This document shows, one piece after another, positions 6,385-33,700 of a stretch of 41,158 nt of DNA. Source of the stretch: Hyphochytrium catenoides (lineage: Eukaryota > Protista > Hyphochytriomycota); contig FLMG01003107.1 in NCBI GenBank assembly GCA_900088475.1, positions 1-41,158 of the forward strand, written 5' to 3'. A program made the translations under genes and the position numbers. The notes below the pieces were generated by a model. The model saw only the letters and a list, made by a program, of their open reading frames with translations, was not told the DNA's origin and did no database searches. Within the stretch, counting starts at the first letter, position 1. The number at the start of each line of letters is the position of its first letter.

Positions 6385-7485
6385 GTCGGATGCCTTTGCA
6401 GGTTTGCTGGAGGGTAAATTGGATAATGACTGAGACTGGGAGCTTCTTCCAATCTCTGCACATGCTAAGACGTACTTGTTAACTTTAAGAGAGCACCAGG
6501 AGAAGACGCGATGGTTGTCTGTGCCACTAAGCCTTGCAAGAGAGAAGCTCCTTCGCTAATTTCATCGTGTCTAAACTTCTCAGATCATAGGGAGGTGGCA
6601 TTCCTTCTTTGGCCCTTCTTCTGTTCCCTTCTTTCCGCTCGATAATAAAGGTAGCAGGACTGTTCATCTCACACTAGATAGAGGACAGCGGCAGCAACCT
6701 GAGGAGGGGTTACCCTGTTGCAACCCTTGGCCAGGTCTTGTCTATGTTGCACTACCGCTGTAGCGGTGCGCTGCACTTTTAATAAGGAGCAGAGACTGTC
6801 AGAAAGCTGTGTGGATACCTACAGAGCAATGCTTCTGAACCCTCCGCAGACTCTACGTGAAGCTCAGTGTTCGCCATCATTGGCCCGGTATCCTCCTTCT
6901 CAGTGTCTCTCGCCACCGCTGAAGCACTTCCATTGGAAAGAATAAGGGGGATGATAGAGCGACCAAGGAAGTCGACACGTCTTTAGTCCTTATTAATCTA
7001 GAGGACGATGTCGTTGCTGCACCAGCCATCGATCCCTCTACGTGCAATAGAAAGAACTCTCTTCAAAGGCTCAACTCTTTCTCCAACAGCACCAGGGAAC
7101 CATGCGACTATGACGGACAAGAGCGTCTCTTATCTTCTCACCTGCCTGCTGCTGCTGCTGCTGCTGCAGCCAAACAACAACTGATGACTTTGGAGTGGTC
7201 TCATGTTATCCCTATGCACTTTCGGGGTAGGACCACCATCTGTCGTTTCCTGTCAGCTCCAGCAGGGAGAGAGCAGACGACGACACCAGACCCAGCGGCC
7301 TCGGCTGCTGCTGCTGCTGTCAATGGGTAAGGCTGCTTCCTGCTGACGCCTCTTCTCTCGTCATAGAAAACTACTTTTCACTTTCTCTTTTTCTTGCCTG
7401 AAGCATCGAAATAGAGCGCACTTGAGAGACAGAGTAAGAAGGAGAAAGGGTTGTACTAAGCAGAGGTAAAGAGAGGGGGGACACG

Positions 7486-7730
7486 AGAGAGAGAGAGAGA
7501 GAGAATTGAGAAAGAGAGAAAAGAGAAGGTAGAGAGAGAGGAGAGAAAGAGAGACTGAGAAAGAGAGGGAAGAGATAGATAAAGATAGCGATAGAGATAC
7601 ATAATTTGAGAGATAAAATATATATATAGAGAGAGAGAGCGAGATAGTGTGTGGGTGAGAGAGAGAGAGAGAGAGAGAAGACGCAGAGAGACAGAGAAAG
7701 AGAGAGAGAGACAGAGCGATAGAGAGAAGA
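7486..7730. repeat. Compound (GA)n/(TA)n low-complexity tract
   Basis: Directly visible. Confidence 0.85.
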
Positions 7731-8972
7731 AAGCGACTACATATCCCTGTCCCCTCTTCCCTCCTATCATCACACGTCCTTTCTGTCCCTCTGACACACC
7801 ACAACCGGCCCCTCCTCACGCTCACTCTTCTAGTATCGTCCCCATGCCTGTTGTCGTTGTTATCGGATGTTCGTAAATCTGTTTCCTAGGTGTCGGACGC
7901 GTTCGTTACTGGGGGAGAACAGCATGAAGATCCATTGCACTTCTTGAAAGGTTGAAGCGCCATCATCTGCCACTTCTATAGACGCCCGCTGCTGCTGCTG
8001 CTGCACTACTGACGACACTGACGCGCCTCCTCGCTGATGGCCCTGGCTTGTCGCCTCTCTTTTGCTCGCTGCTGCCTGCGCTGCTGAGTCTGGCAGGCTG
8101 CTGAGGAGAAGAGAATTGCTAGCACGAGGTAGGATTTAGTAGAATAGCTCAATGCGCAATGAGGGTTTATCAGGGGTTGATGATGATAAGCATGTAATGA
8201 GGGGTGGATGACGGAGATTGATGAGCATTGGTTCGCTGCACAGGGGATGGATGAAGCAGGGTGGCGAACGCGTTCTTATTCTACGATGATAGTGAGGTGG
8301 AGACGATCTTTGAGGGCTGTAAAAGAGAAATGACGAGGACAAAATCGTAGACGGATGTCCATCATTGTGCAGCAGACCACTTTTGGGAGACAACAAAGAA
8401 GACACCATCACTTGGAGTTTGCTATCAACTCCAATGACTGATGTCCTTGAGCCTTGCCATATATTCCGAGTGCCTAATGTTCATTGAACGAGTCCTGAAG
8501 AATGCATAGTCCTTGGGCTTACTAGACTATAGTCTCCGCCTATCAACACCAGTTGCTGATAGAAGTGCGCCTCTTTAGCCACGCTTTTACTACTGATAAT
8601 GTGAGGAGGGTGAGGTCTGGGAAGGAAGGATAAGGGCCTGCGATCGTGTCCACCATCTTTGGTACGCCATCCTAGACCTTATCGTACAGGCAACTAGCGC
8701 TTGGTCCGTCACGAGGTGAGGCTTGAAGCGCGTTCCACATCGCTTGCCATCCTTCAGACCCTGCTTATTATGGCCGCCCAAGTTCCTGAGGCTCCTAACC
8801 CGGTAGTCGTCATAATCCAAGCCCAGGTTTGTTATTGATTTTGGAGCCTTCAAGCTGGAGAAGAACACCTGTGTCCTGTCTTCAGCTTAGGAAGCAGCGA
8901 TGAGAGCTCTCCGTTGTCTTTTTCTTCCGCCCTTGGAACAGACGACTAATGTACCGGAAAGCTGGCCATGGT

Positions 8973-18700: not shown

Positions 18701-18840
18701 GAAAGCACACTATGCTTAATGGCTTAATGGTAGAGGCGGCAGATGCGTGAGGACGAGGAAGTGTGTGGAAGAGGCATGCTGCCATTCAAAACCCACCTCT
18801 TGTGGATAGATGATGGAACTACAAAGTTAGCTCAAGGTTT

Positions 18841-18939
18841 GGAGAGAAAGAGAGAGAAAGAGAGAGAGAAACAGAGAGAGAGACAGAGAGAGAGAGGGAG
18901 GGAGAGAGAGAGACAGAGAGAGGGTGTGAGAGGGAGAGG

Positions 18940-18970
<31 letters not shown>

Positions 18971-19050
18971 NNNNNNNNNNNNNNNNNNNNNNNNNNNNNN
19001 NNNNNNNNNNNNNNAGAGAGAGAGAGAGAGAAAAAGAGAGAGAGACAGAC
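18841..19050. repeat. (GA)n microsatellite spanning an assembly gap (N at 18971-19014)
   Basis: GA runs flank 44 N. Confidence 0.9.
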
Positions 19051-19417
19051 GAGGAGAAAGTTGGACCCTGCGATGTTGCAAAGAGCCGCAGCGCAGGGTC
19101 AGAATGCACAATCCACAGACAGAGGGAGAGTGATAGAGAAGAGAGACTCCATTGAAAGTGTATCTAAACGAGGGAGAGAGGAGAGCAACGGCAGCAGGAG
19201 TAAGCGTCTCCTATGACGTTGCGGTCTCGACTGTCTCTTGACACATTTTATTGAAGCCAGCGTCTCACAGGCCCATACATCAAGCCGACATACGACCAAA
19301 AGGTTGATCATCTGTTTTACTCGGAGCATAAGAAGATAGATTCCGTCGCAGCCTTATCTTATTATACCGATCCTCAGCCTATCTACATTAGAAGACATCG
19401 CCGACAGGAGCCTGACC

Positions 19418-20236
19418 ATGTATTCTGCGAACAGGGAACCTCATCCCAAGCAAGAAGCGATGGCTATGCAAAGTCCTCCACAGCCGAAGGAGGAAGCAGA
19501 GGTTTCAGAGCCAATTGTACCGACCAGCCCACAGAGGGGACTTCAGAGTGCGATCACGAACGAAGCGTTCAAGCACAGCATCTCACCTAAACCGCAAAGA
19601 TCACCAACAGACTTCACTGTCCTGGCAGCACCAGAAGCCAAAGCCACCGGTGCTTCTAACCTCTTTCCGCCATCTCCAGCGGCAGCTACTCAGCGGAAAA
19701 GGTCTAGACAGGAGGCTACTGATCCGTCATCTGTAGCCGAGGAGGAGAAGGAAAGCCTAGAGGAGCTCGGGAGAACCATTGTCACCTTTGGCCGAAGACA
19801 TAGGGGGCAGACCTTCAAGTATGTCTATGACCACGACTGGGGATACTGTCATTTTTTTGCAGTAGCACAAGCCGACCCCAGCCCTCAGCTTGCAAACCTA
19901 ATAAGCTACATTAAGCAGAGAGACAGGGAGGAGCGAAAGCTACGGGAGGCGGAGTTACGAAGAGAACTTCTAGAGGAAGCGGAGAGGTTCGTTGCTAAAT
20001 GCAACTGTGATGCTTGGATGGACCAGTACGTTTTGAGTCAGCTGGAGCGGGGTTGGAAAGGCTATTGTTGGGACTGGTTGGAAGACGGCTACTGCCCCGG
20101 TTGTCCTTACAAACATGCCTATCCGAAGAACTGGACTGAGGAAATGAAGAAGAGACACGCTGACATGCTTGACAGTCGAGACTTTTTTTACAATCCTGAC
20201 GAGGACTACTACTCTGATGCTGATTATTTTGATTAA
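19418..20236 (+). CDS. Tandem family copy 1: FG-x-H-x-G module plus CCCH zinc-finger protein, 272 aa, intronless
   Basis: Uninterrupted ORF with motifs SNLFPPSP, RKR, LEELGRTIVTFGRRHRGQTFKYVYDHDWGYC, a coiled-coil and GYC-x8-C-x2-C-x3-H. Clearly homologous to the two downstream ORFs. Confidence 0.8.
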   Translation: MYSANREPHPKQEAMAMQSPPQPKEEAEVSEPIVPTSPQRGLQSAITNEAFKHSISPKPQRSPTDFTVLAAPEAKATGASNLFPPSPAAATQRKRSRQEATDPSSVAEEEKESLEELGRTIVTFGRRHRGQTFKYVYDHDWGYCHFFAVAQADPSPQLANLISYIKQRDREERKLREAELRRELLEEAERFVAKCNCDAWMDQYVLSQLERGWKGYCWDWLEDGYCPGCPYKHAYPKNWTEEMKKRHADMLDSRDFFYNPDEDYYSDADYFD

Positions 20237-21274
20237 GAGAACAGACGAGAAGCGTTGGATCCGCAGGCGAGGGCTTGCGTCCTGTGTAGAACAATCTTTG
20301 TTCTTCTACGTGTTACGGTCTTTTGTGCAGTCTTTATGAGTTAATGAAGTGCTTCTGAATCAGACTTAGTCTTCCAGCGCTGATAAGAGTGCGCCTTTCC
20401 TCGTTGACTCCATCGAGACGCATTCTTGGTACGCCTGAACCCGGCCCTTCATCTTGCTCAGTCTGGGCAGGCTCTAGGTCGACCTGTATGGGCATCATTG
20501 ACGCAAGTAAATTTGAGATATGATGACTGCTAAGAGGGGTTAGAGACAACGAGCCCTTCCCTCAGTAGCTCCACCGCCCGTCAAAACCGACACCGAAGGG
20601 TTGGAAGGCTTTCATCGACCTCAGGGATCTGCGGTAGAAAGCAGGCACTACCTGGCGTCTGGATGATGGAAAGGTATCAAAAACTCTAACAAATGCAGCT
20701 CCTGGTTGATGGCTGGAGGATGGCGTTACAGGTGCGAACACAAGCTTCTTCTGAGAACCCAAATTTAAGATAAATCTCCAAAAGATAAACATCTGATACG
20801 GCAAGGGTAAATCGTGTTCTACCGAGATTAATCCAAGCACTGCGTTTACTGCTTGTTTATAGTCACCAAAACTTTCCCCTTCCTTCTTGTCCGCAAGCCT
20901 CCACGAAAATACTAGGACAGCACACGCAATTTGCACACCTGTACCTCGCAAAACACGAACTCTGTGTGCTGACGAATCAGAACAATCAGAATCAGTCCCC
21001 GTCATGGTGGGACATCGCCCGTTGGAACCTTGGCGCTCATGACTCCGCCGCAGCTATCGTGAAGAAACAAGAGCAGAGCAGGCTTTGGCGATAGGGCAAC
21101 GGGTTCGGCAAAGCTCTCCCATCGTTGCGGAGAGAAGGCTGATGATGCTCTGAGAGTATGGTGCACGGTGGCACAGTTCTCTTTGTTGTCAGTTGTAAAG
21201 GACGAGAAGCGTGTCTTCTTGAGAGCATTAGCTGCCACTTTCCCTTTCCTAGGTAAGTTGCAAGACCTCTCCCC

Positions 21275-22330
21275 ATGGCCAAGATGCCGTCCGACAAGAA
21301 GCGGGGCAAAGTAAAGCCGCAAGGGGTACCAACAGTCAAACAAGAGCCAGAAACGTCAGCAAGCACCACTGGCTCAGAGCAGAGTGATGATGATAATAAG
21401 AAGCTCACTTCCACCCCAAGGACGCCTTCCCAACGAAAAGGTAAGGGAGAAAATGGACCTGCCAGAGTTAAAAGAGAAGCTGCGATGGAGTCAAAGCGGA
21501 ACAGAGCTGAAGAGCAATATCAGCCAGGAGAACAGGTAGCAGTGCCATCCACCCCCCGGCGACCTAAACCTGTAGTTAAAGGGGAACCAGTAAGACCGAA
21601 GAGTGCGACCATCTCTCCAGAGCAGCAAAGAGTGGCAAGGCAAGCAGTGGAGGACGAAGCACCTCCAACTCAAAAACCGGCAAGTGCCGTTAATCTCTTT
21701 CCCACGTCGCCTCGCCCGGACCTTCCGCACAGAAAGAGAGCGAGAGAAGAAGCAGAGAAGGACGAGGGCATACAGCACGAAGAAGCTGGCGGAGAGGACT
21801 CACTAAGCCTGGAAGACCACGGAAATACCATTGTCGACTTTGGCATGCACAGAGGAAGGACATACAAGGAAGTGTATGACTCGTACCCTGGTTATTGCTA
21901 CAATTTCGCTTTGGCAGTAATAGACCCAAGCCCCCCTTTGACCGAGCTGATAGAATATGTCAAGAGAAGAGACGCCGCAGAACGAGAGGCGAGGAACAGA
22001 AGGCGTGAAGATCTGAAGTCAGCTTTACATCGCAGGCAAGCTATGGCAGGCACAACTCTTCAAGGCTTGCATCAGCAAGAGCATTGTGATGACGATGATG
22101 ATGGCATCTATGATGATTATGAGCCATTCGAAGCCTGGATGGACCGTTATGTTTCAAGCCATCTAGGGAAGGGACTGCTTGGCTACTGCTGGGAATGGCT
22201 GGATGAAGGGTACTGCGGTGGTCCCTGTCGCTATCTGCACACTTATCCGCGTTCCTGGACCGAGGCACAGAAGCAGCAACATGCTGCCAAAAGGACTAGA
22301 GCGGCCTATAATTGGTACTTGTCCCGCTAG
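21275..22330 (+). CDS. Tandem family copy 2: FG-x-H-x-G module plus CCCH zinc-finger protein, 351 aa, intronless
   Basis: Uninterrupted ORF (in-frame TAA at 21254 upstream) with SAVNLFPTSP, RKR, LEDHGNTIVDFGMHRGRTYKEVYDSYPGYC, FEAWMDRYV and GYC-x8-C-x3-C-x3-H. Confidence 0.82.
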   Translation: MAKMPSDKKRGKVKPQGVPTVKQEPETSASTTGSEQSDDDNKKLTSTPRTPSQRKGKGENGPARVKREAAMESKRNRAEEQYQPGEQVAVPSTPRRPKPVVKGEPVRPKSATISPEQQRVARQAVEDEAPPTQKPASAVNLFPTSPRPDLPHRKRAREEAEKDEGIQHEEAGGEDSLSLEDHGNTIVDFGMHRGRTYKEVYDSYPGYCYNFALAVIDPSPPLTELIEYVKRRDAAEREARNRRREDLKSALHRRQAMAGTTLQGLHQQEHCDDDDDGIYDDYEPFEAWMDRYVSSHLGKGLLGYCWEWLDEGYCGGPCRYLHTYPRSWTEAQKQQHAAKRTRAAYNWYLSR

Positions 22331-23445
22331 ATGACTTCCATCTTTCTTTCATAGGGAAGAGAAAGATAGAGAAGAGCGATGACGTGGGAGGAGGAGTTGG
22401 AAATTGCAGACGAAGGCGAAGAGACCAATCTAACTGACGGTAGTAGGGGCAATATACTCAAAGAGTCAGGATACCATGCCCCTTGTACATAAGCTTTGCA
22501 CTTCTCTTTTATAATAACATATAAATACATAGACTGATCATGCTGCTTTGCTCACGGTTGACTACTATCAGTGACAGCTCCTCATAATAGTGGTTCATCG
22601 GGTTCTTATTAGGATGCGGGCTTTCCAATATCAGTGCCAGGAGCGACTCCAGTACTAGCAGCCTCTCCGCTTTTCTCGACCCTGTAGCCTTCCTCGGCGT
22701 TCATCAGAAGACATGCCTTTTGGAAAGCAGAAGCCTGGAGCCTTGGTGGTGTGGCCATTGGCTACCAGTACCTTGTTCATCAAACAAAGCCAAAGAGGTC
22801 GTCGGCTGCTAGATAGAGGACCAAACTGACTTACGACGTGCGTTCAAACGGTATAACAGCCGCTGCGTGCTCAGGTTATACTTCCTCGGGTTTGGTCCGT
22901 CGAGCCGCAGCCGCCCAGGTCAGAAGCCATCATCGCCCACCGCACTACTACCGTTAACAAGCAACAAACTATTAAAAAAGAGGGATCACTTTTTTCAACC
23001 GCTACGGTCGGACGGCCTGTCAAATAACTATGTAAATGCCCCGGAACCTTTCGTCTGTTCTGTTCAAGTCTGTGAATATTGTTAAACGCGAAGATAACGT
23101 TTTCTTTATCAATGTATTCATGCTGGGCAGAAGGAGGAAGTTTCGGCGACGTCTACTTCCAAGCTTGAGACCAACAATGGGACGCCCTAGTGAGAGAGCA
23201 GCCTGGATGGGAGGTGGGGCCCGCGCCGGGCAATGCACAGAGAGCATGATGAGGCTCAAAGAGATTATGAGATACCCCCGTGCAGCCACCACCACATTGT
23301 GTATGTCCTTGCTCTTCACGGATGGAAAAGCCGCCACCGCGGCCACGGGGAGAAGAAACGAAGACGGTATGTGGACAGATTGATGTACACGCGCCGCGAG
23401 GATAGACTGTTCAAAGTCCTTTAGAGGAGCCATGGTACGGGTTGA

Positions 23446-24328
23446 GGAAGACTGCCGACCCATGTCTATAGCTCGGACGAGGAGGAGGTAGAGGCAGAAG
23501 AGGAAGGAGATCTTACAGAAGAAGAAATCGCGCCTCATGAGTGTACACCTGTACGTCTTCAGACTGTCGCTCAAGCTTCTTTAAGAGCACTTGTTGACGC
23601 TTCCATCTCCCCCCCACGAACGGAGAGAAGATGCCAATGGAGTATCAATGACCCTACTACCAGCGGCGCCTCTGAGGCCTGTGAGTGCTGCGAACCTGTT
23701 TCCTGCGTCAGCACCAGATAGTTCTAGAAAGAGGCCTAGGGAAGAAGGAGGCCAGACCAACGAGGATAATGAGATCTTAGAGCTGAGCCTGGAAGAGCAC
23801 GGCAAACTTGTCGTCAACTTTGGCATGCACCAAGGCAAGTCGTACAAGCAAGTCTACGACACAGCTCGCGGCTACTGCTATGACTTTGCTCTGAAAGTGG
23901 CAGACCCGCAACCGCCCTTGACGGATCTCATAAAGTATATCAAGAGGAGACAAAGGGTCGACATAGAAGCAGAAGAAGAAAGAGGCCGAGCAAGAAGAAG
24001 GTTGGCGACAGGAAGTCAGGCGCTCCTGGCGACAGGAAACGACGCGCAACAAGGCAACTTTGCCGCGGGGGATGAGGGCTGTGTAGGCGATGACTATTAT
24101 GAGCCCTTTGAGGCTTGGAGAGAACGCTACGTATCCAGCCGTCTTCAACGTGGTCTGCATGGCTACTGCTGGGATATGCTTGAGTGGGGTGGCTGCTACG
24201 ACCAGCGCTGCCCGTACAGCCATACTTACCCGCCAAATTGGAATGCCGTGGACTGAGTGCAGCACGGAGTCAGAAGGAAGGCTGTCGGACCTCGTGGAGA
24301 AATAATAGCTTCGTTACCGCTATTATGA
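23446..24328 (+). pseudogene. Tandem family copy 3: core ORF 23591/23648-24256 intact, N-terminus frameshifted at the C7 run (23609-23615), premature TGA at 24254 (likely pseudogene or truncated allele)
   Basis: The core has SAANLFP, RKR, LEEHGKLVVNFGMHQGKSYKQVYD, FEAWRERYV and GYC-x8-C-x4-C-x3-H. Homology to copies 1 and 2 continues upstream in another frame (..EEEIAPHECTPVR..ASISP) and past the TGA (WNAVD*VQHG versus WTEAQKQQHA). Confidence 0.6.
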
Positions 24329-25666: not shown

Positions 25667-28600
25667 ATGCCTCCTAAGAAGGCCACCGGAGGGAAGGTGA
25701 CGGGGAAGAGGTGAGTGATGGGATTAGGCCGAGTAAGAGCCGCGATACTGTCACTTAGATGGAAGACGCTACTGCTCTGCAGACGAAGAGACGGCTGACC
25801 CTTGTGCAACTTGCTCCCACAGGACAATTGCGGAGAGGCTTGAAAGCCTTCGGAGCAACCCTTTTGAGAAGAGAAGCAATCTTAAGCAAAAGCACAACGT
25901 GATCGGCCGTAGGGTTAAAGGACAGAACCGAGATGTGGCTGCCGCGAGGTTGAGGGCTGTCGAGAAGCGAAAGAAGACCCTGTTGCTAGAATATAATAGT
26001 AGGGGCAAAACGAACTCCTTCAAGGATAGGTAAGACAGCCGATCAGAGGCAGCCACCACTGAGCTGAGAGCTATCACTGAGCACCTTCCTTCTCATCGCC
26101 AGCCCCCTATTCCTTTCCTGTCACCCGCCAAGAGTTCATGTCCAGCTTCTCTCTTCCTCCGGGCTCACCTCTTCTTAACTTTCTTTCAGCCGTAACTCGC
26201 CTCTTGACTCTCTGCGATGCCATCTGTCTCATTTTCTCATTGTATAGGCGGTTTGGAGAGAAGGATGATGGGAGTATGTCCATGGAGGACAAGCTTTTTG
26301 CGCGCTTCCAGGCAGAGAGAAAGAAGCGAGTGCGGAACTCTTCTCTCTTCAATCTTTCAGAAGAACCCGCGCCGGAGGACGTCCTCACTCACGGAGGGAA
26401 GGTTATTGACGACTTTCAGGATGTGGATGTGGAGAGACAATCCTCGGACGAGGAGGATGATCATGAGGCTAATGCCACAATCACAGAGAGACTGCATTTT
26501 GGAGGAGGAGAAGGACGAGATGGGGAGAAGGAAGAGAGGGATAACCGCTCTCATAAAGAGATCATGGCGGAGGTGATTGCCAAGTCAAAGCTTCATAAGC
26601 AGGAGCGCCAACGACTGAAGGAGGAGAGGGAAGACCTTACCGAGGCTCTGGACAGCGAGTTTTCGTCGCTCCAAGGCTTGTTGAGCTTCAGGCCTAAGAA
26701 GAATGTTAGTGAGAAGGATTGCGCGATGGCTTTCTACTAGTATCCCGGCGCTCTGCTCTTCCGCCCTGAACTCACCTTGATATCCGCGCCTAGACGTCCT
26801 CCTCATACCTTCCAGATTTGTTGATATGTTCCTTCTCTGGCTCCCTCTGTCCCTTGCTCGCCTCTCACTTTGGTGTCTCTCTTTACCTGGCCTAACCTTT
26901 CTCACTCTCTTAGGAGCGTCAGGAGGAGCGCGAGGCTCCTGATCACTACGACAAGATTACTCGGGAGCTTGCGTTTGAGGCAAAGGCGAAAGCCACTAGT
27001 CGAACCTTGACACCAGAGGAGCAGGCGCAGAAGGAGAAAGAGAAGGCAAGGGATCTACCATTCCTCTTCTGCTACAATCCCTTACCGTCCCACCACTTCC
27101 CCCAGCTCCGTCGCGTTATCCTCTTGCTTCTCTGCGGTCTCGGCTTGTGAGTCCCACTTTAGCATCCGTTCCTAGCCTTTTCTGTCCTAGAGTGTTGCCT
27201 TTGGTGCTGCTCCTCCTGCTCTTGCAGATTGACTCCCAACATTCAACGTAGCTTTCCTTCCTTCCCAATCTTCGTGCCTTTATACACCGACCTTTCTACC
27301 CAAGATCCGTCCGTTGGCCAGCCATTCAGAGCGTGCGACACTAAACGGCTAACGTTTCGTTTGTCTTTATTTAGCTTGAAGAGCTTGAGAAGAAGAGACT
27401 GAGAAGGATGCAGGGTTTGCCGTCTGACAGCGAAGATGAGACAGAGAAGGGAAAAAAGAAGAGGAGAGGACCAGCAACAGATGATGACCTGAATGATGAT
27501 TATGCCATAGACCCCGCCAATGAAGACGAGGAAGAAGAGGGAGACCTTCTTTCCTCAGATGACGAAGGAGAAGAGGAAGAGGATAGTGAGGAAGAAGAGG
27601 AAGAAGAGACAGAGAAGCCTTCTAAGAGACTTAAGCCCTCTGCCGACAGAGATGAAGCGGAGGAGGAGGAAGGGGAAGAAGAAGACACTGATGAAGGATC
27701 AGACCTGGAGAATGATGATGAAGTCGAACTCTCTCCCAGTGAAAAGAAAGAGCAGGGCGCAGAGGAAGACGATAATGGAGAAGGAGCTGACATGGGCAAA
27801 GAGAAGGCGAAACAACGCCAGGCAGCGAAGGATGAAATTCCGTACATCTTCCCTTGTCCCTCTTCTCTGTCGGAGCTCTTGGCTCTCCTTGCGAACTATG
27901 CAAAGAAACCAGCCGATGATCTGCTCATTGTCTCCCGCATCCTCAAGTGCCACTCCATACATTTGGGAGGCGAGAACAAGAAGAAGCTCACAGCTTTTTT
28001 TGGCGTCATGCTGCAGTTCTTCCTCCATCTAGCGGACAACGATCATGAGACCGAGGAACGAAAGGAGGAGGTAACGAAGCGAGACACCGTCTTTCGCTGT
28101 TCTTCTTTCTCTCTTTTCGGCACTCATTGTGTGGAACTTCTACTCTGATGAGCTCTTTCACATCTCGTCCTCCCATCACTGGGATAAGTCCCTATGGCCG
28201 CCTTATTGCCTTCTCAACTTCTGTTAACTCTTCCTTCTTTCATCTCCTCATTGTGGTTTGACTTCAGCTTATCTCTTTGTTGCCGGTCTTTCTGGGTAGA
28301 TTTCTGAGTTGTCGAAGGTCCTCTGGCAAGTGGCTCAGGAGCTGCCTGAGGTTGCTGGGAAAGGTTTCCGATCTCAGTTGGAAGCCATTCGCCTGGAGTT
28401 TTATAAGAGGAAGATGGATAAGAGGCAAGGTGCCACGGTCTCCTCCGCTTGGCCATCTCTTTCTTCCCTTCTATTTTTCCGCCTTCTCCCCAACATCTTT
28501 CCCAGCAGTGACTTTAAGCACTCTGTCGTCTCGCCCGCAGAGCTCCTTATTTGCCAGGTGAGAAAGTGATGTGGTTCTCTCTCTCTCTCTCTCTTTCTCG

Positions 28601-30778: not shown

Positions 30779-33700
30779 TTACATACTTGAGGGCAGTCCT
30801 TGCTCCCTGATCTGGACTTGAGAGAGAAGAGAGGAGAGTTTCTCCTTTTCCTCTGGCTTCAGGCCACTCTCCTTCGCCAGGATAAGCAGGAGAGACAGGG
30901 CGACCTGATACTTCTCTGCTGCCTCTTTCTCCTGTCGCATGAACTCGCTTACTATCCCTTCCCTTACATACCGCACGGCACTACTATATATAACCTCCTC
31001 TATCGGTACCTCGCCCTCCCCTCCTTGGACGTGTTGCAGGCAGCTCTCAGCCAGTTGGAGGCAAGACGAGAGCTGAGAGAAGAGCCACTTGATGCTCGAA
31101 AGGAGCTCGAGGGGAAGGGAAGAGCGCGGTGTGGGGGAGGTCGAGAGAGAGAAAGAGCGAGGAGGGAGAGAACGGAGAGTGTGCTGGATGATTCTCTGCA
31201 ATAATTGCAGTGCCTTCACATACAATCCCCCAGCCTCCTTAAAAGAGAGAGTAGCAGAGACTTCAGCGGAGGAGTGAGAGACTATCGGAGATGCCGCCTG
31301 CTTATCGCCGTCACGCTGCGTAGCTTCCAAACGCTTGAGAGCAGGGCTAGCTGCCTCCTGTCTCTGTATGGAGGCGACCTCAGCCTCCTGGGCAAGAAGC
31401 AGTAGAGCAATGACTTTTTTTCTCTCTTCTTCTATGAATGCCAGCAGCTCATCATAAATATTTCTTTTGCTATATAAAGGGGCCGACGGAGAGGCAGCAG
31501 TGAGAGTTGGAGAGGGAGAAGGGCAAGCGAGCCCTCTTCCTGAGGGTACCCTGTCCTCAAAGGCGGGCGATGGAGCTCTGTGAGAAGAAGAGGCGATGGG
31601 AACACTCTGTCGACGGCGAATGGAAGTGAGATCCGCGTCTGGACTCGGGTCATAACGGTTGTTCTCGCGATCTACCAAGACGAAGTCGTTATCCGAGCCC
31701 TCCGCGCCACCTGCTCCTTGTCCCCTCTCCCTCTCGCCTTCCCTGCCACTGTTAACGCGAGAGCGGGAGAAAGAAAGGCGTGACGGTTCGGCGGAGCCTC
31801 CTCCAGACGGGGGAAGAGGAGGGAGAACGCTCTTAAATGGGTTGAGACGGATTGGGGTGGATGCATTACTGCCAGAAGCGTCTGGACGGGCACCCAAGTA
31901 ACCAATGCCTCCGTCCGCCCTGCTGCTACCCGTTCTCTCCCTCTCAGACCCTCCAAACTGCTTAGGACTGATAGACAAACGGGAAAGCTCGGGATAGGTG
32001 CTTGGAGCTATTTGTGACTTCCTAGAAAAGTCTCCAGAAGGCGACGAAGCAGGAGCACGACTCCCCTGTGGGAACAAAATGGTGAAAAAGTGCCGCGTGT
32101 GTGAGAGTCAATCGTACTGTCACGCTCGTGGGGAGACAAGGACTATAAGGTAGAAATCGTCTTCCGCGAGAAAACGCGCAGAAGCGGCTCTCCCCTCAGA
32201 CACCACCATGAACGAAGCGATAAAGCCGAAGACATGCAGATAAAGAGGAGAGACCAAAAAGAGAGAATGGTTCAGGCAGCTTCCTAGCTGTCTTACCGTA
32301 GCTCCTGATGTAGTTACTATGGGGCTAACCCCTCCCGCTGTCCTCTCCTGCAAACTAGGATTTGACGTTGACGCTCCTCCGTCGCCTCTCCCTCCAACCA
32401 AGCCCGTCACCTCCGCCAACGGAGACGGCGGCGTCTGTGAGCTTATGGGCGGGGACGGAGCATAAGGGGAGGAAGGAGGTAATGGAAGCCGCGAGGAGTC
32501 CGGACGAGTGCCGCCGCTCTTCTCTGAAGCTTTAAGGAAAGGATGATTGAAAAAGTCTTCAAAAGAGACTCGCAGGACCGGATTCCGCCTGAGCAGTAGC
32601 TGATAGACAACGAGTGACCAGGGAAGAATAACCATGCGCGAGTGAGGACACAACTATCGATAGATAATAGAGCGCTGACCAAACCCTAGCCCTAAGGACT
32701 CCAAAGCTCCCGAGAAAATAGCAGCAATGAGTAGAGCAAAAGCCTAGAGGGAGCTCTGGGAGCTGAACATCATAGAACCATAATAGGAGACCTTTTTGGA
32801 GAGAGCCAAAGGAGGGGACCAGCACGCTGTCATACCTGTAAGAGATCTAAGCACTCCGAAGACAGCTTCACTTCGGGTGGAATCCTGAGCTCGTTCCTCT
32901 CAATGTTAGAAAGCAATTGAATATGGTTGGCGCCATTGAACGGCGGCTTCCCAACAACCTGATCAGCGGGAGAGCTGGAGTCAGGAGGTGTGCTTCCCTG
33001 AGAGGTCGTGCAACCAGGCAACCATCATGAAGGGAGATCGGATAGAGAATGCGGCCAAGCAGCACACAGCGACAGGGCAAAAGTAGAGCTTGACACAGGT
33101 GAATAGGGTGGCAGCAGGGGAGGGGACTTAAAGCAGGGTGAGATAAGACAGACCATTTCGTAGAGAATGGCGCCCACGGACCAAAGGTCAGCCTTGGCGT
33201 CGTATTTTTGAAACTTCAGGATCTCTGGGGCCTGATAGTATCAGACATTACGGAGAGAAAAAGAGAGATTAGCTTGGCTAATTGCTGAAGGATGGCAAAA
33301 AGAGCAGAAGGCAGCCCTGACATAGCAAGGTTAAGAAGAGTGATGCAGGTGTGAGTGTGCTTATTAGCAGGGTAATGCTGGTGTCTGGCGTGGGAGATAC
33401 TTCCTACCATATACAGGGGAGAGCCACATAGCGTCTCCGCCATTGACGCCGCGGCCAAGTGCCGTGCAAAGCCAAAATCAGCTGCAGGAGATGGAAAGAG
33501 AGGTAAAGACAAGACAAAAGGTAAGTCAACAAGCTCAGAGCGAGATGCACAAGCACGATGAGGGTCTCACCAATCTTTAGCGTGGCATCTAGGGATTTCG
33601 TTGTAAGCAGCAGATTCTGGGGTTTCAAGTCACGATGGATAAGATTCTTCGACCATAGAAACTCCAAACCTTGGGCTGCGCCACCGAAGGAAGAAAGGTC

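Follow-up and report, generated by a model that had tools for sequence, protein, structure and literature searches.

Exonuclease X (ExoX) of Escherichia coli carries a C-terminal accessory module, represented in Pfam by PF20600 (ExoX-like_C), which is also found on many phage, giant-virus and protist proteins. The module is a non-catalytic add-on of about 50 residues to other domains, and we know of no solved structure of it. Residues 1–167 of the E. coli enzyme, which lack this part, keep nuclease activity, and the crystal structure of ExoX was likewise made without it (PMC3753628). In this study, we examine 41,158 nucleotides from Hyphochytrium catenoides (assembly GCA_900088475.1, contig FLMG01003107.1, positions 1 to 41,158 of the forward strand; hereafter the window), in which three neighbouring genes, p1, p2 and p3, are predicted to join a divergent module of this kind to an atypical CCCH zinc finger. 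We give an even chance to the view that a single intronless gene was duplicated in tandem long ago to give the three, and that their small, non-catalytic products are nuclear adaptors binding nucleic acids or partner proteins.

The other described relatives are the C3H1 fingers (PF00642 and PF18044 in Pfam, C3H1-type in PROSITE), present for instance in CPSF30 and TIS11d. Their ligands follow the order C-x8-C-...-C-x3-H, usually with 4–5 residues between the second and third cysteines (C2 and C3); C1 and C3 are each followed by an aromatic residue, and a glycine precedes C2. Ordinary CCCH fingers hold single-stranded nucleic acid through aromatic residues.

The array consists of three intact, single-exon open reading frames (ORFs) in tandem on the + strand, with 1857 bases between the starts of p1 and p2 and 2316 between those of p2 and p3. 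Searches of the 61 Mb assembly with a full-length profile and, separately, with a profile of either module found no copies besides p1–p3. The three proteins align with 39–43% overall identity and 63 invariant columns, a similarity far beyond chance. All of them contain, in this order, an NLFP motif, an RKR motif, module 1 (ExoX-like_C/DUF3820-type; hereafter E), a variable acidic linker and module 2 (a CCCH knuckle plus its flanks; hereafter Z). Module E spans about 55 residues with the consensus LE..G..V.FG.H.G..K.VYD...GYC..FA....DP.P.L..LI.Y.K.R and is 55–60% identical between copies, while Z, with the consensus AW...YV.S.L..G..GYCW..L..G.C..C.Y.H.YP..W, is 61% identical. A preliminary description of this DNA had reported three same-strand paralogues about 2 kb apart with this succession of motifs, and both the ORFs and the alignment confirm it; the end that it gave for the array, 24328, lies 72 bases beyond the p3 stop codon. 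The features of the array are as follows.

19418–20236, + strand: gene p1, 272 amino acids (aa), single exon (ORF and alignment; profile match in its own genome, E-value 2.2e-126)
19658–19702, + strand: p1 NLFP to RKR, candidate monopartite nuclear localisation signal (invariant N81 L82 F83 P84 and R93 K94 R95)
19754–19921, + strand: p1 module E (hhalign 98.9%, E-value 1.5e-17; predicted local distance difference test score, pLDDT, about 97–98)
19922–20011, + strand: p1 linker, predicted to prolong the last helix of E as a single long helix, model residues 51–89 (predicted secondary structure; proportion of nonsynonymous differences, pN, 0.51–0.57; net charge −2)
20012–20134, + strand: p1 module Z, with a helix, the CCCH knuckle C-x8-C-x2-C-x3-H and YP..W (predicted ligands C112, C121, C124 and H128)
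21275–22330, + strand: gene p2, 351 aa, single exon, with the longest basic N-terminus of the three (ORF and alignment; profile E-value 2.2e-151)
21692–21739, + strand: p2 NLFP to RKR (alignment)
21806–21970, + strand: p2 module E (alignment and profile)
22133–22258, + strand: p2 module Z, C-x8-C-x3-C-x3-H (alignment and profile)
23591–24256, + strand: gene p3, open frame of 221 aa (ORF; profile E-value 5.2e-115)
23693–23734, + strand: p3 NLFP to RKR (alignment)
23786–23950, + strand: p3 module E (alignment and profile)
24113–24241, + strand: p3 module Z, C-x8-C-x4-C-x3-H (alignment and profile)
24254–24277, + strand: p3 TGA (24254–24256) plus in-frame remnant, homologous to the tail helix (profile match passing one TGA to 24277; translations)

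Alignment and structural model together depict each protein as a disordered N-terminus with NLFP and RKR, a single divergent E, an acidic, helical linker and then the CCCH knuckle in its extended form. The N-terminus is predicted to be disordered, as had been supposed earlier, with pLDDT values below 50 when AlphaFold2 is run on the three-sequence alignment. RKR is a candidate nuclear localisation signal, proposed from its K/R-K/R-x-K/R pattern. The p3 frame opens directly behind a stop codon; counted from the first ATG, at 23648, the protein would have 202 aa. At its other end, the TGA at 24254–24256 interrupts the tail-helix region present in p1 and p2, so p3 lacks the last helix of Z; in the remnant past this TGA, the conserved histidine sits three codons after the stop. 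Either this one paralogue was truncated fairly recently, or the absence of the last Z helix is tolerated. No catalytic domain was found in p1–p3 by Pfam and PDB sequence searches, in agreement with the preliminary description, and searches of Pfam, PHROGs and PDB sequences with the three proteins returned nothing significant.

The affinities of module E emerge from an exhaustive profile search in which the NLFP-to-end alignment of p1–p3 was compared with 1.84 billion representative proteins. This search yielded 261 proteins at an E-value of 0.001 or below, 57 of them at 1e-10 or below. Domains were annotated, with hidden Markov models (HMMs) of E and Z, on the best 150 of the 261, and all counts out of 150 given here refer to that set. 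PF20600 is present on 115 of the 150 and PF12843 (QSregVF_b, formerly DUF3820) on 18. When window E was aligned by hhalign with the repeats of Pfam-positive proteins, chosen by a simple motif, the probability was 98.9% and the E-value 1.5e-17 over 49 columns. PF20600 members share with window E a length of about 50 residues, FG-[KRM]-H-x-G-x-[TS]-[FY], the D/P..Y motif and a helix at the end. The scheme FG-K-[HY]-x-G-x-T-[FY], after which come [DE]P.Y..W and a helix, is fitted by window E in the form FG.H.G.[TS][YF]K.VYD...GYC..FA, with its helix after DPSP and phenylalanine in place of tryptophan.

In the BFVD library of viral structures, the p1 model matches uncharacterised giant-virus proteins, from pithovirus-like viruses, an iridovirus and Tetraselmis virus 1, with probability 1.0 over about 53 residues (root-mean-square deviation, rmsd, 1.6–2.2 Å; E-values 0.016–0.3); an annotated ExoX-like_C phage protein (E-value 2.3) and a protein of Sinorhizobium phage phiM9 stand lower in the same list. 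Profile search and hhalign agree with the earlier assignment of the first module to the ExoX/DUF3820 accessory type, and the viral structure matches may do so as well. In contrast to PF20600 members, window E falls below the Pfam models, has phenylalanine (C..FA) where tryptophan is usual, occurs once per protein instead of in the arrays of 2–9 repeats common among the matches, and is fused to a CCCH knuckle, not to a DEDD nuclease as in ExoX. Judged by sequence, the window modules are best described as divergent superfamily members of ExoX-like_C/DUF3820, not as members by the Pfam threshold.

The second module had been described as an atypical CCCH finger, and motif, ligand conservation and a confidently predicted fold uphold this; binding of zinc and nucleic acid is predicted. 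The pattern C-x7-9-C-x2-8-C-x3-H is kept in 40 of 41 family segments. In an alignment of 39 sequences, the positions conserved at 90% or more are C112, C121, C124, H128 and one leucine. AlphaFold2, run on p1 residues 106–272 with the family alignment, gave a mean pLDDT of 92.3, and the model comprises a compact E, a long helix that leads out of E across the linker, and a helix-knuckle-helix Z (an earlier run on the three-sequence alignment, with a pLDDT of 52, was set aside as a model). Ligand order, the aromatic residues after C1 and C3 and the glycine before C2 are those of C3H1 fingers. Z differs from them in the C2–C3 spacing, which is 2–4 residues in the window and 2–8 in the family, and in its obligatory flanks. 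The C1–C2, C2–C3 and C3–H spacings are 8/2/3 in p1, 8/3/3 in p2 and 8/4/3 in p3, so that the canonical C2–C3 spacing is found in p3 only. Beyond the knuckle, W...Y[VI]..H is conserved in the preceding helix, and YP..W and a helix with a conserved histidine follow. The best sensible, albeit weak, fold match is the CCCH-plus-helix part of metapneumovirus M2-1 (PDB 4cs9), with a Z-score of 3.1 and an rmsd of 3.9 Å over 50 residues. As in Z, the CCCH knuckle of pneumovirus M2-1 is directly followed by a helix (model residues 107–158 against chain residues 2–54), but the identity of 20% is too weak to equate the folds, and the proteins have no other domain in common and offer no evidence of homology.

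Proteins related to p1–p3 are sparse but, as far as sequence comparison can tell, widespread among eukaryotes, and the family is uncharacterised. Most of the best 150 matches are arrays of 2–9 E modules, about 40 bear Z, nine have the order E-Z or E-E-Z, and a few have Z-E. At the extreme of the arrays are P0001 and P0005, two metagenome proteins of 630 aa each, in which 8–9 ExoX-like_C repeats in tandem, recurring every 61 residues or so, take up almost the whole length. An architecture like that of the window was found in P0003, P0006, P0008, P0055, P0069 and P0088. Among them, P0006 is an E-E-Z protein of the green alga Ostreobium quekettii (CAD7696109.1), P0055 an E-Z protein of the chytrid fungus Borealophlyctis nickersoniae (KAJ3294055.1) and P0088 an E-Z protein from a dinoflagellate transcriptome. 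The Ostreobium homologue (A0A8S1IQM5) bears the UniRef label "C3H1-type domain-containing protein". The foraminifer Bolivina argentea has a Z-E protein, the xanthophyte Tribonema minus one with two DUF5710 (PF18974) followed by Z (KAG5189711.1, P0032), and the remaining relatives come from marine and other metagenomes.

The Ostreobium (P0006) and Borealophlyctis (P0055) proteins resemble those of the window in having one or two E, a linker and then Z, with a basic K/R cluster near the N-terminus. Unlike the window proteins they lack NLFP and are encoded by a sole copy within about 10 kb, and the Ostreobium protein has two E. The E-Z proteins of both organisms are themselves uncharacterised in public databases. 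In Tribonema, the same Z is C-terminal as well, with DUF5710 rather than ExoX-like_C as its N-terminal partner; a search of the H. catenoides genome detected no DUF5710. ExoX-like_C, DUF5710 and Z form a recurrent set of combinations in protist and metagenome proteins (P0108, P0032, P0104 and P0148). The 1010-aa protein P0108 contains both ExoX-like_C and DUF5710, each of which also pairs with Z elsewhere.

The supposition that the family is lineage-specific therefore fell, since a green alga, a chytrid, a dinoflagellate and marine metagenomes all have proteins built in this way, and Z is present in a xanthophyte and a foraminifer too. The HMM search for a known family that had been proposed did find relatives, all E-Z ones being uncharacterised. 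Other routes added nothing to this set: a word-index protein search gave no match with p2 and three matches, all previously found, with the 39-sequence family alignment, and the ESM Atlas scores of the window proteins (0.78–0.79) are within noise.

The duplications are old. Between paralogues, Nei-Gojobori estimates put synonymous differences (pS) at a proportion of 0.70–0.99, about 0.8, which is saturated, whereas pN is 0.19–0.29 in E and Z and 0.51–0.57 in the linker, as expected from the earlier remark that quickly diverging linkers join conserved cores. Detectable similarity among the three units is confined to the coding sequence, and the intergenic DNA can no longer be aligned; a repeat unit with conserved intergenic DNA was accordingly rejected. 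The ratio of nonsynonymous to synonymous substitution rates (dN/dS), which had been suggested as a check, was computable for one pair, E of p2 versus p3, and is about 0.10, not near 1. Saturated synonymous sites and unalignable intergenic DNA indicate that the duplicates are old, with E and Z under purifying selection. Five homologous loci could be read and contain one copy each within about 10 kb, which argues that the tandem triplication is local to this genome.

How such proteins might work can be outlined as follows. They would be imported into the nucleus through RKR, the CCCH ligands of Z would bind zinc, and the knuckle would hold single-stranded nucleic acid via its conserved aromatic residues beside C1 and C3. 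Module E would provide the docking site for a partner protein or for a DNA structure, a role suggested by the nucleases and the RING, SAP and BRCT proteins that it decorates and by its dispensability for ExoX catalysis. Domains accompanying E among the 150 are RING (9 proteins), His_Phos_1 (9), DUF5710 (5), SAP (4) and BRCT (2). Acting together, E and Z would bring nucleic acid to a DNA/RNA-processing or chromatin factor, and the three paralogues, which differ in their N-termini and linkers, would hence differ in partners or regulation. Taken as a whole, this mechanism of nuclear adaptors joining nucleic acid with a processing or chromatin factor is tentative, and we put it somewhat short of even.

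Several observations weigh against the adaptor interpretation. PF20600 gives no match to p1–p3 at an E-value of 1 or below (gathering threshold 26.5 bits), nor any in a six-frame search of the genome at 10 or below, and PF12843 does not match the window proteins (threshold 22 bits). Similarly, the curated CCCH models (PF00642, PF18044, PF18345 and others) match none of p1–p3; within the 150, PF00642 matches a single protein, of a generic multi-finger type, and P0006 hits PF18044 at an E-value of 0.019, below the cut-off. Among PDB sequences, nothing scores better than a CPSF30 finger, with an E-value of only 4.3. PDB fold searches, made with the whole two-domain model, gave nothing significant, only helical noise (best Z-score 5.3), and we do not claim the Z fold as new. 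The net charge of Z is close to zero (−1 to +1), and the whole proteins p1 and p3 are acidic (isoelectric points 5.3 and 5.5), which is atypical of a strong nucleic-acid binder. Finally, the biochemical role of ExoX-like_C is undescribed in the literature found; searches for DUF3820, DUF5710, PF20600 and ExoX-like retrieved no functional study.

The surroundings of the array are those of ordinary cellular genes. Nop14, a spliced gene of nucleolar ribosome biogenesis, lies directly downstream on the + strand, and a MIT-domain gene follows.

26138–26740 and 27408–28148, + strand: consecutive parts of Nop14 (E-values 4.6e-43 and 5.6e-34)
30779–32077, − strand: ORF of 431 aa with a weak C-terminal MIT domain (E-value 1.1e-4, under the Pfam cut-off)

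Just upstream of p1, a long GA-rich microsatellite (18818–19079) encloses an assembly gap (N run 18971–19014) and yields spurious ERER/LSLS ORFs at 18743–19216 (+ strand) and 18819–19111 (− strand). Rfam and tRNA scans of the window gave no match.

Among the alternatives, one concerns the origin of the genes and not their function, namely that the ancestral gene was acquired horizontally, for example from a large DNA virus or as a retroposed copy, and then domesticated and duplicated. The H. catenoides genome has a mean of 3.64 introns per gene (PMC5795050), which makes three single-exon genes somewhat unusual for this host, and the Ostreobium and Borealophlyctis homologues are single-exon too. 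Intronless state, patchy distribution over green algae, chytrids, dinoflagellates, foraminifera and stramenopiles, and E-like folds on giant-virus proteins, which head the matches in the viral library, make horizontal spread a possible origin. One Z-E homologue (positions 7459–7872) lies on a metagenome contig of same-strand small ORFs (L013:1–15645), where none of the 17 called genes, all on one strand, has a Pfam match; the contig may belong to a viral or otherwise unusual genome. Against this origin, the GC content and the GC content at third codon positions of p1–p3 (0.49–0.56) match those of neighbouring cellular genes, and the flanks are cellular. No Z-bearing locus was found in IMG/VR viral contigs (three pattern sets), phage records or prokaryote genomes. 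Z pattern scans of IMG/VR (three alignments), GTDB genomes and JGI metagenomes gave no confirmed relative, blank results that are weak evidence of absence because the patterns are narrow, and tblastn against phage records gave none. A Z tree of 35 rows, which leaves out six divergent ones (P0071, P0089, P0058, P0109, P0028 and P0069), lacks resolution; it neither unites nor separates p1–p3, indicates no donor and lends no support to horizontal spread. On balance, we regard a horizontal origin as unlikely.

A second alternative replaces the nucleic acid by a protein. The near-neutral charge of Z and the acidity of p1 and p3 make protein docking a serious rival, in which the zinc knuckle would be a docking module and p1–p3 acidic nuclear factors resembling chaperones or scaffolds, for example for basic chromatin proteins or for the ubiquitin/SUMO machinery. 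The strongly acidic linkers and tails (net −6 to −7), the occurrence of E with RING in 9 and with BRCT in 2 of the 150 matches, and the lack of significant similarity to RNA-binding CCCH families are all in line with such a role. However, the aromatic residue after C1, the glycine before C2 and the aromatic residue two positions after C3 form the pattern of nucleic-acid-binding CCCH fingers, and the sole structural match, weak as it is, is the RNA-binding finger of M2-1. The ESM language model also leads to zf-CCCH clusters, yet the score, 0.79, does not rise above noise. Pure docking is in our estimation quite unlikely, and binding of nucleic acid by Z is retained in the adaptor interpretation.

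The preliminary description had favoured genome defence or RNA surveillance, with the array as an expanding set of fast-evolving sensors of foreign nucleic acid engaged in an arms race. Tandem triplication, the much faster evolution of linkers and N-termini than of cores, the frequency of the ExoX-like module in phages and giant viruses, and the giant-virus insertions reported in the host genome (PMC5795050) would suit this idea. In contrast, the duplicates are old and their modules under purifying selection, there are just three copies, with single copies at the homologous loci read elsewhere, and the neighbours are Nop14 and the MIT-domain gene, with no linked effector or catalytic gene and no sign of turnover (PADLOC, whose models are prokaryotic, was not run). 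Nor did the scans of phage records and IMG/VR reveal any viral copy of Z. Fast linkers between conserved cores are commonplace in proteins whose linkers are disordered and are no pointer to genome defence. We consider a role in defence or RNA surveillance improbable.

That p1–p3 are chance ORFs or decaying pseudogenes is hardly credible: in p3 the aligned start lacks an ATG and the TGA removes a tail helix kept by p1, p2 and most homologues, but every conserved module has an open frame, pN lies far under the saturated pS, homologues number in the hundreds, the fold is confident, and p3 is at most partly truncated; chance ORFs were rejected on these grounds.

Of the undescribed system for which the array had been the best candidate, what stands is a real and uncharacterised family. 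It is a modestly interesting one and not a new system, and it shows no sign of an unusual mechanism. ExoX-like_C/DUF3820 and DUF5710 have no described function, though phage, plasmid, giant-virus and protist proteins often carry them, and the combinations met (E-Z, Z-E, DUF5710-Z, and E with DUF5710) invite a wider and decidedly speculative thought. Z would be an unmodelled, sparse eukaryotic zinc module that forms, with ExoX-like_C and DUF5710, a promiscuous adaptor network across protists, giant viruses and phages, in which E-Z proteins would be nuclear sensors or recruiters that direct DNA-end or repair machinery towards particular nucleic acids, be they foreign, damaged or nascent. We think this improbable as well; if it were true, exonuclease X would gain a first clue to what its C-terminal module does. 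A family definition of Z would annotate some hundreds of orphan proteins, since no Pfam model covers the finger plus its flanks, and a compact protein with one E and one zinc knuckle is a simple object for finding what such modules bind.

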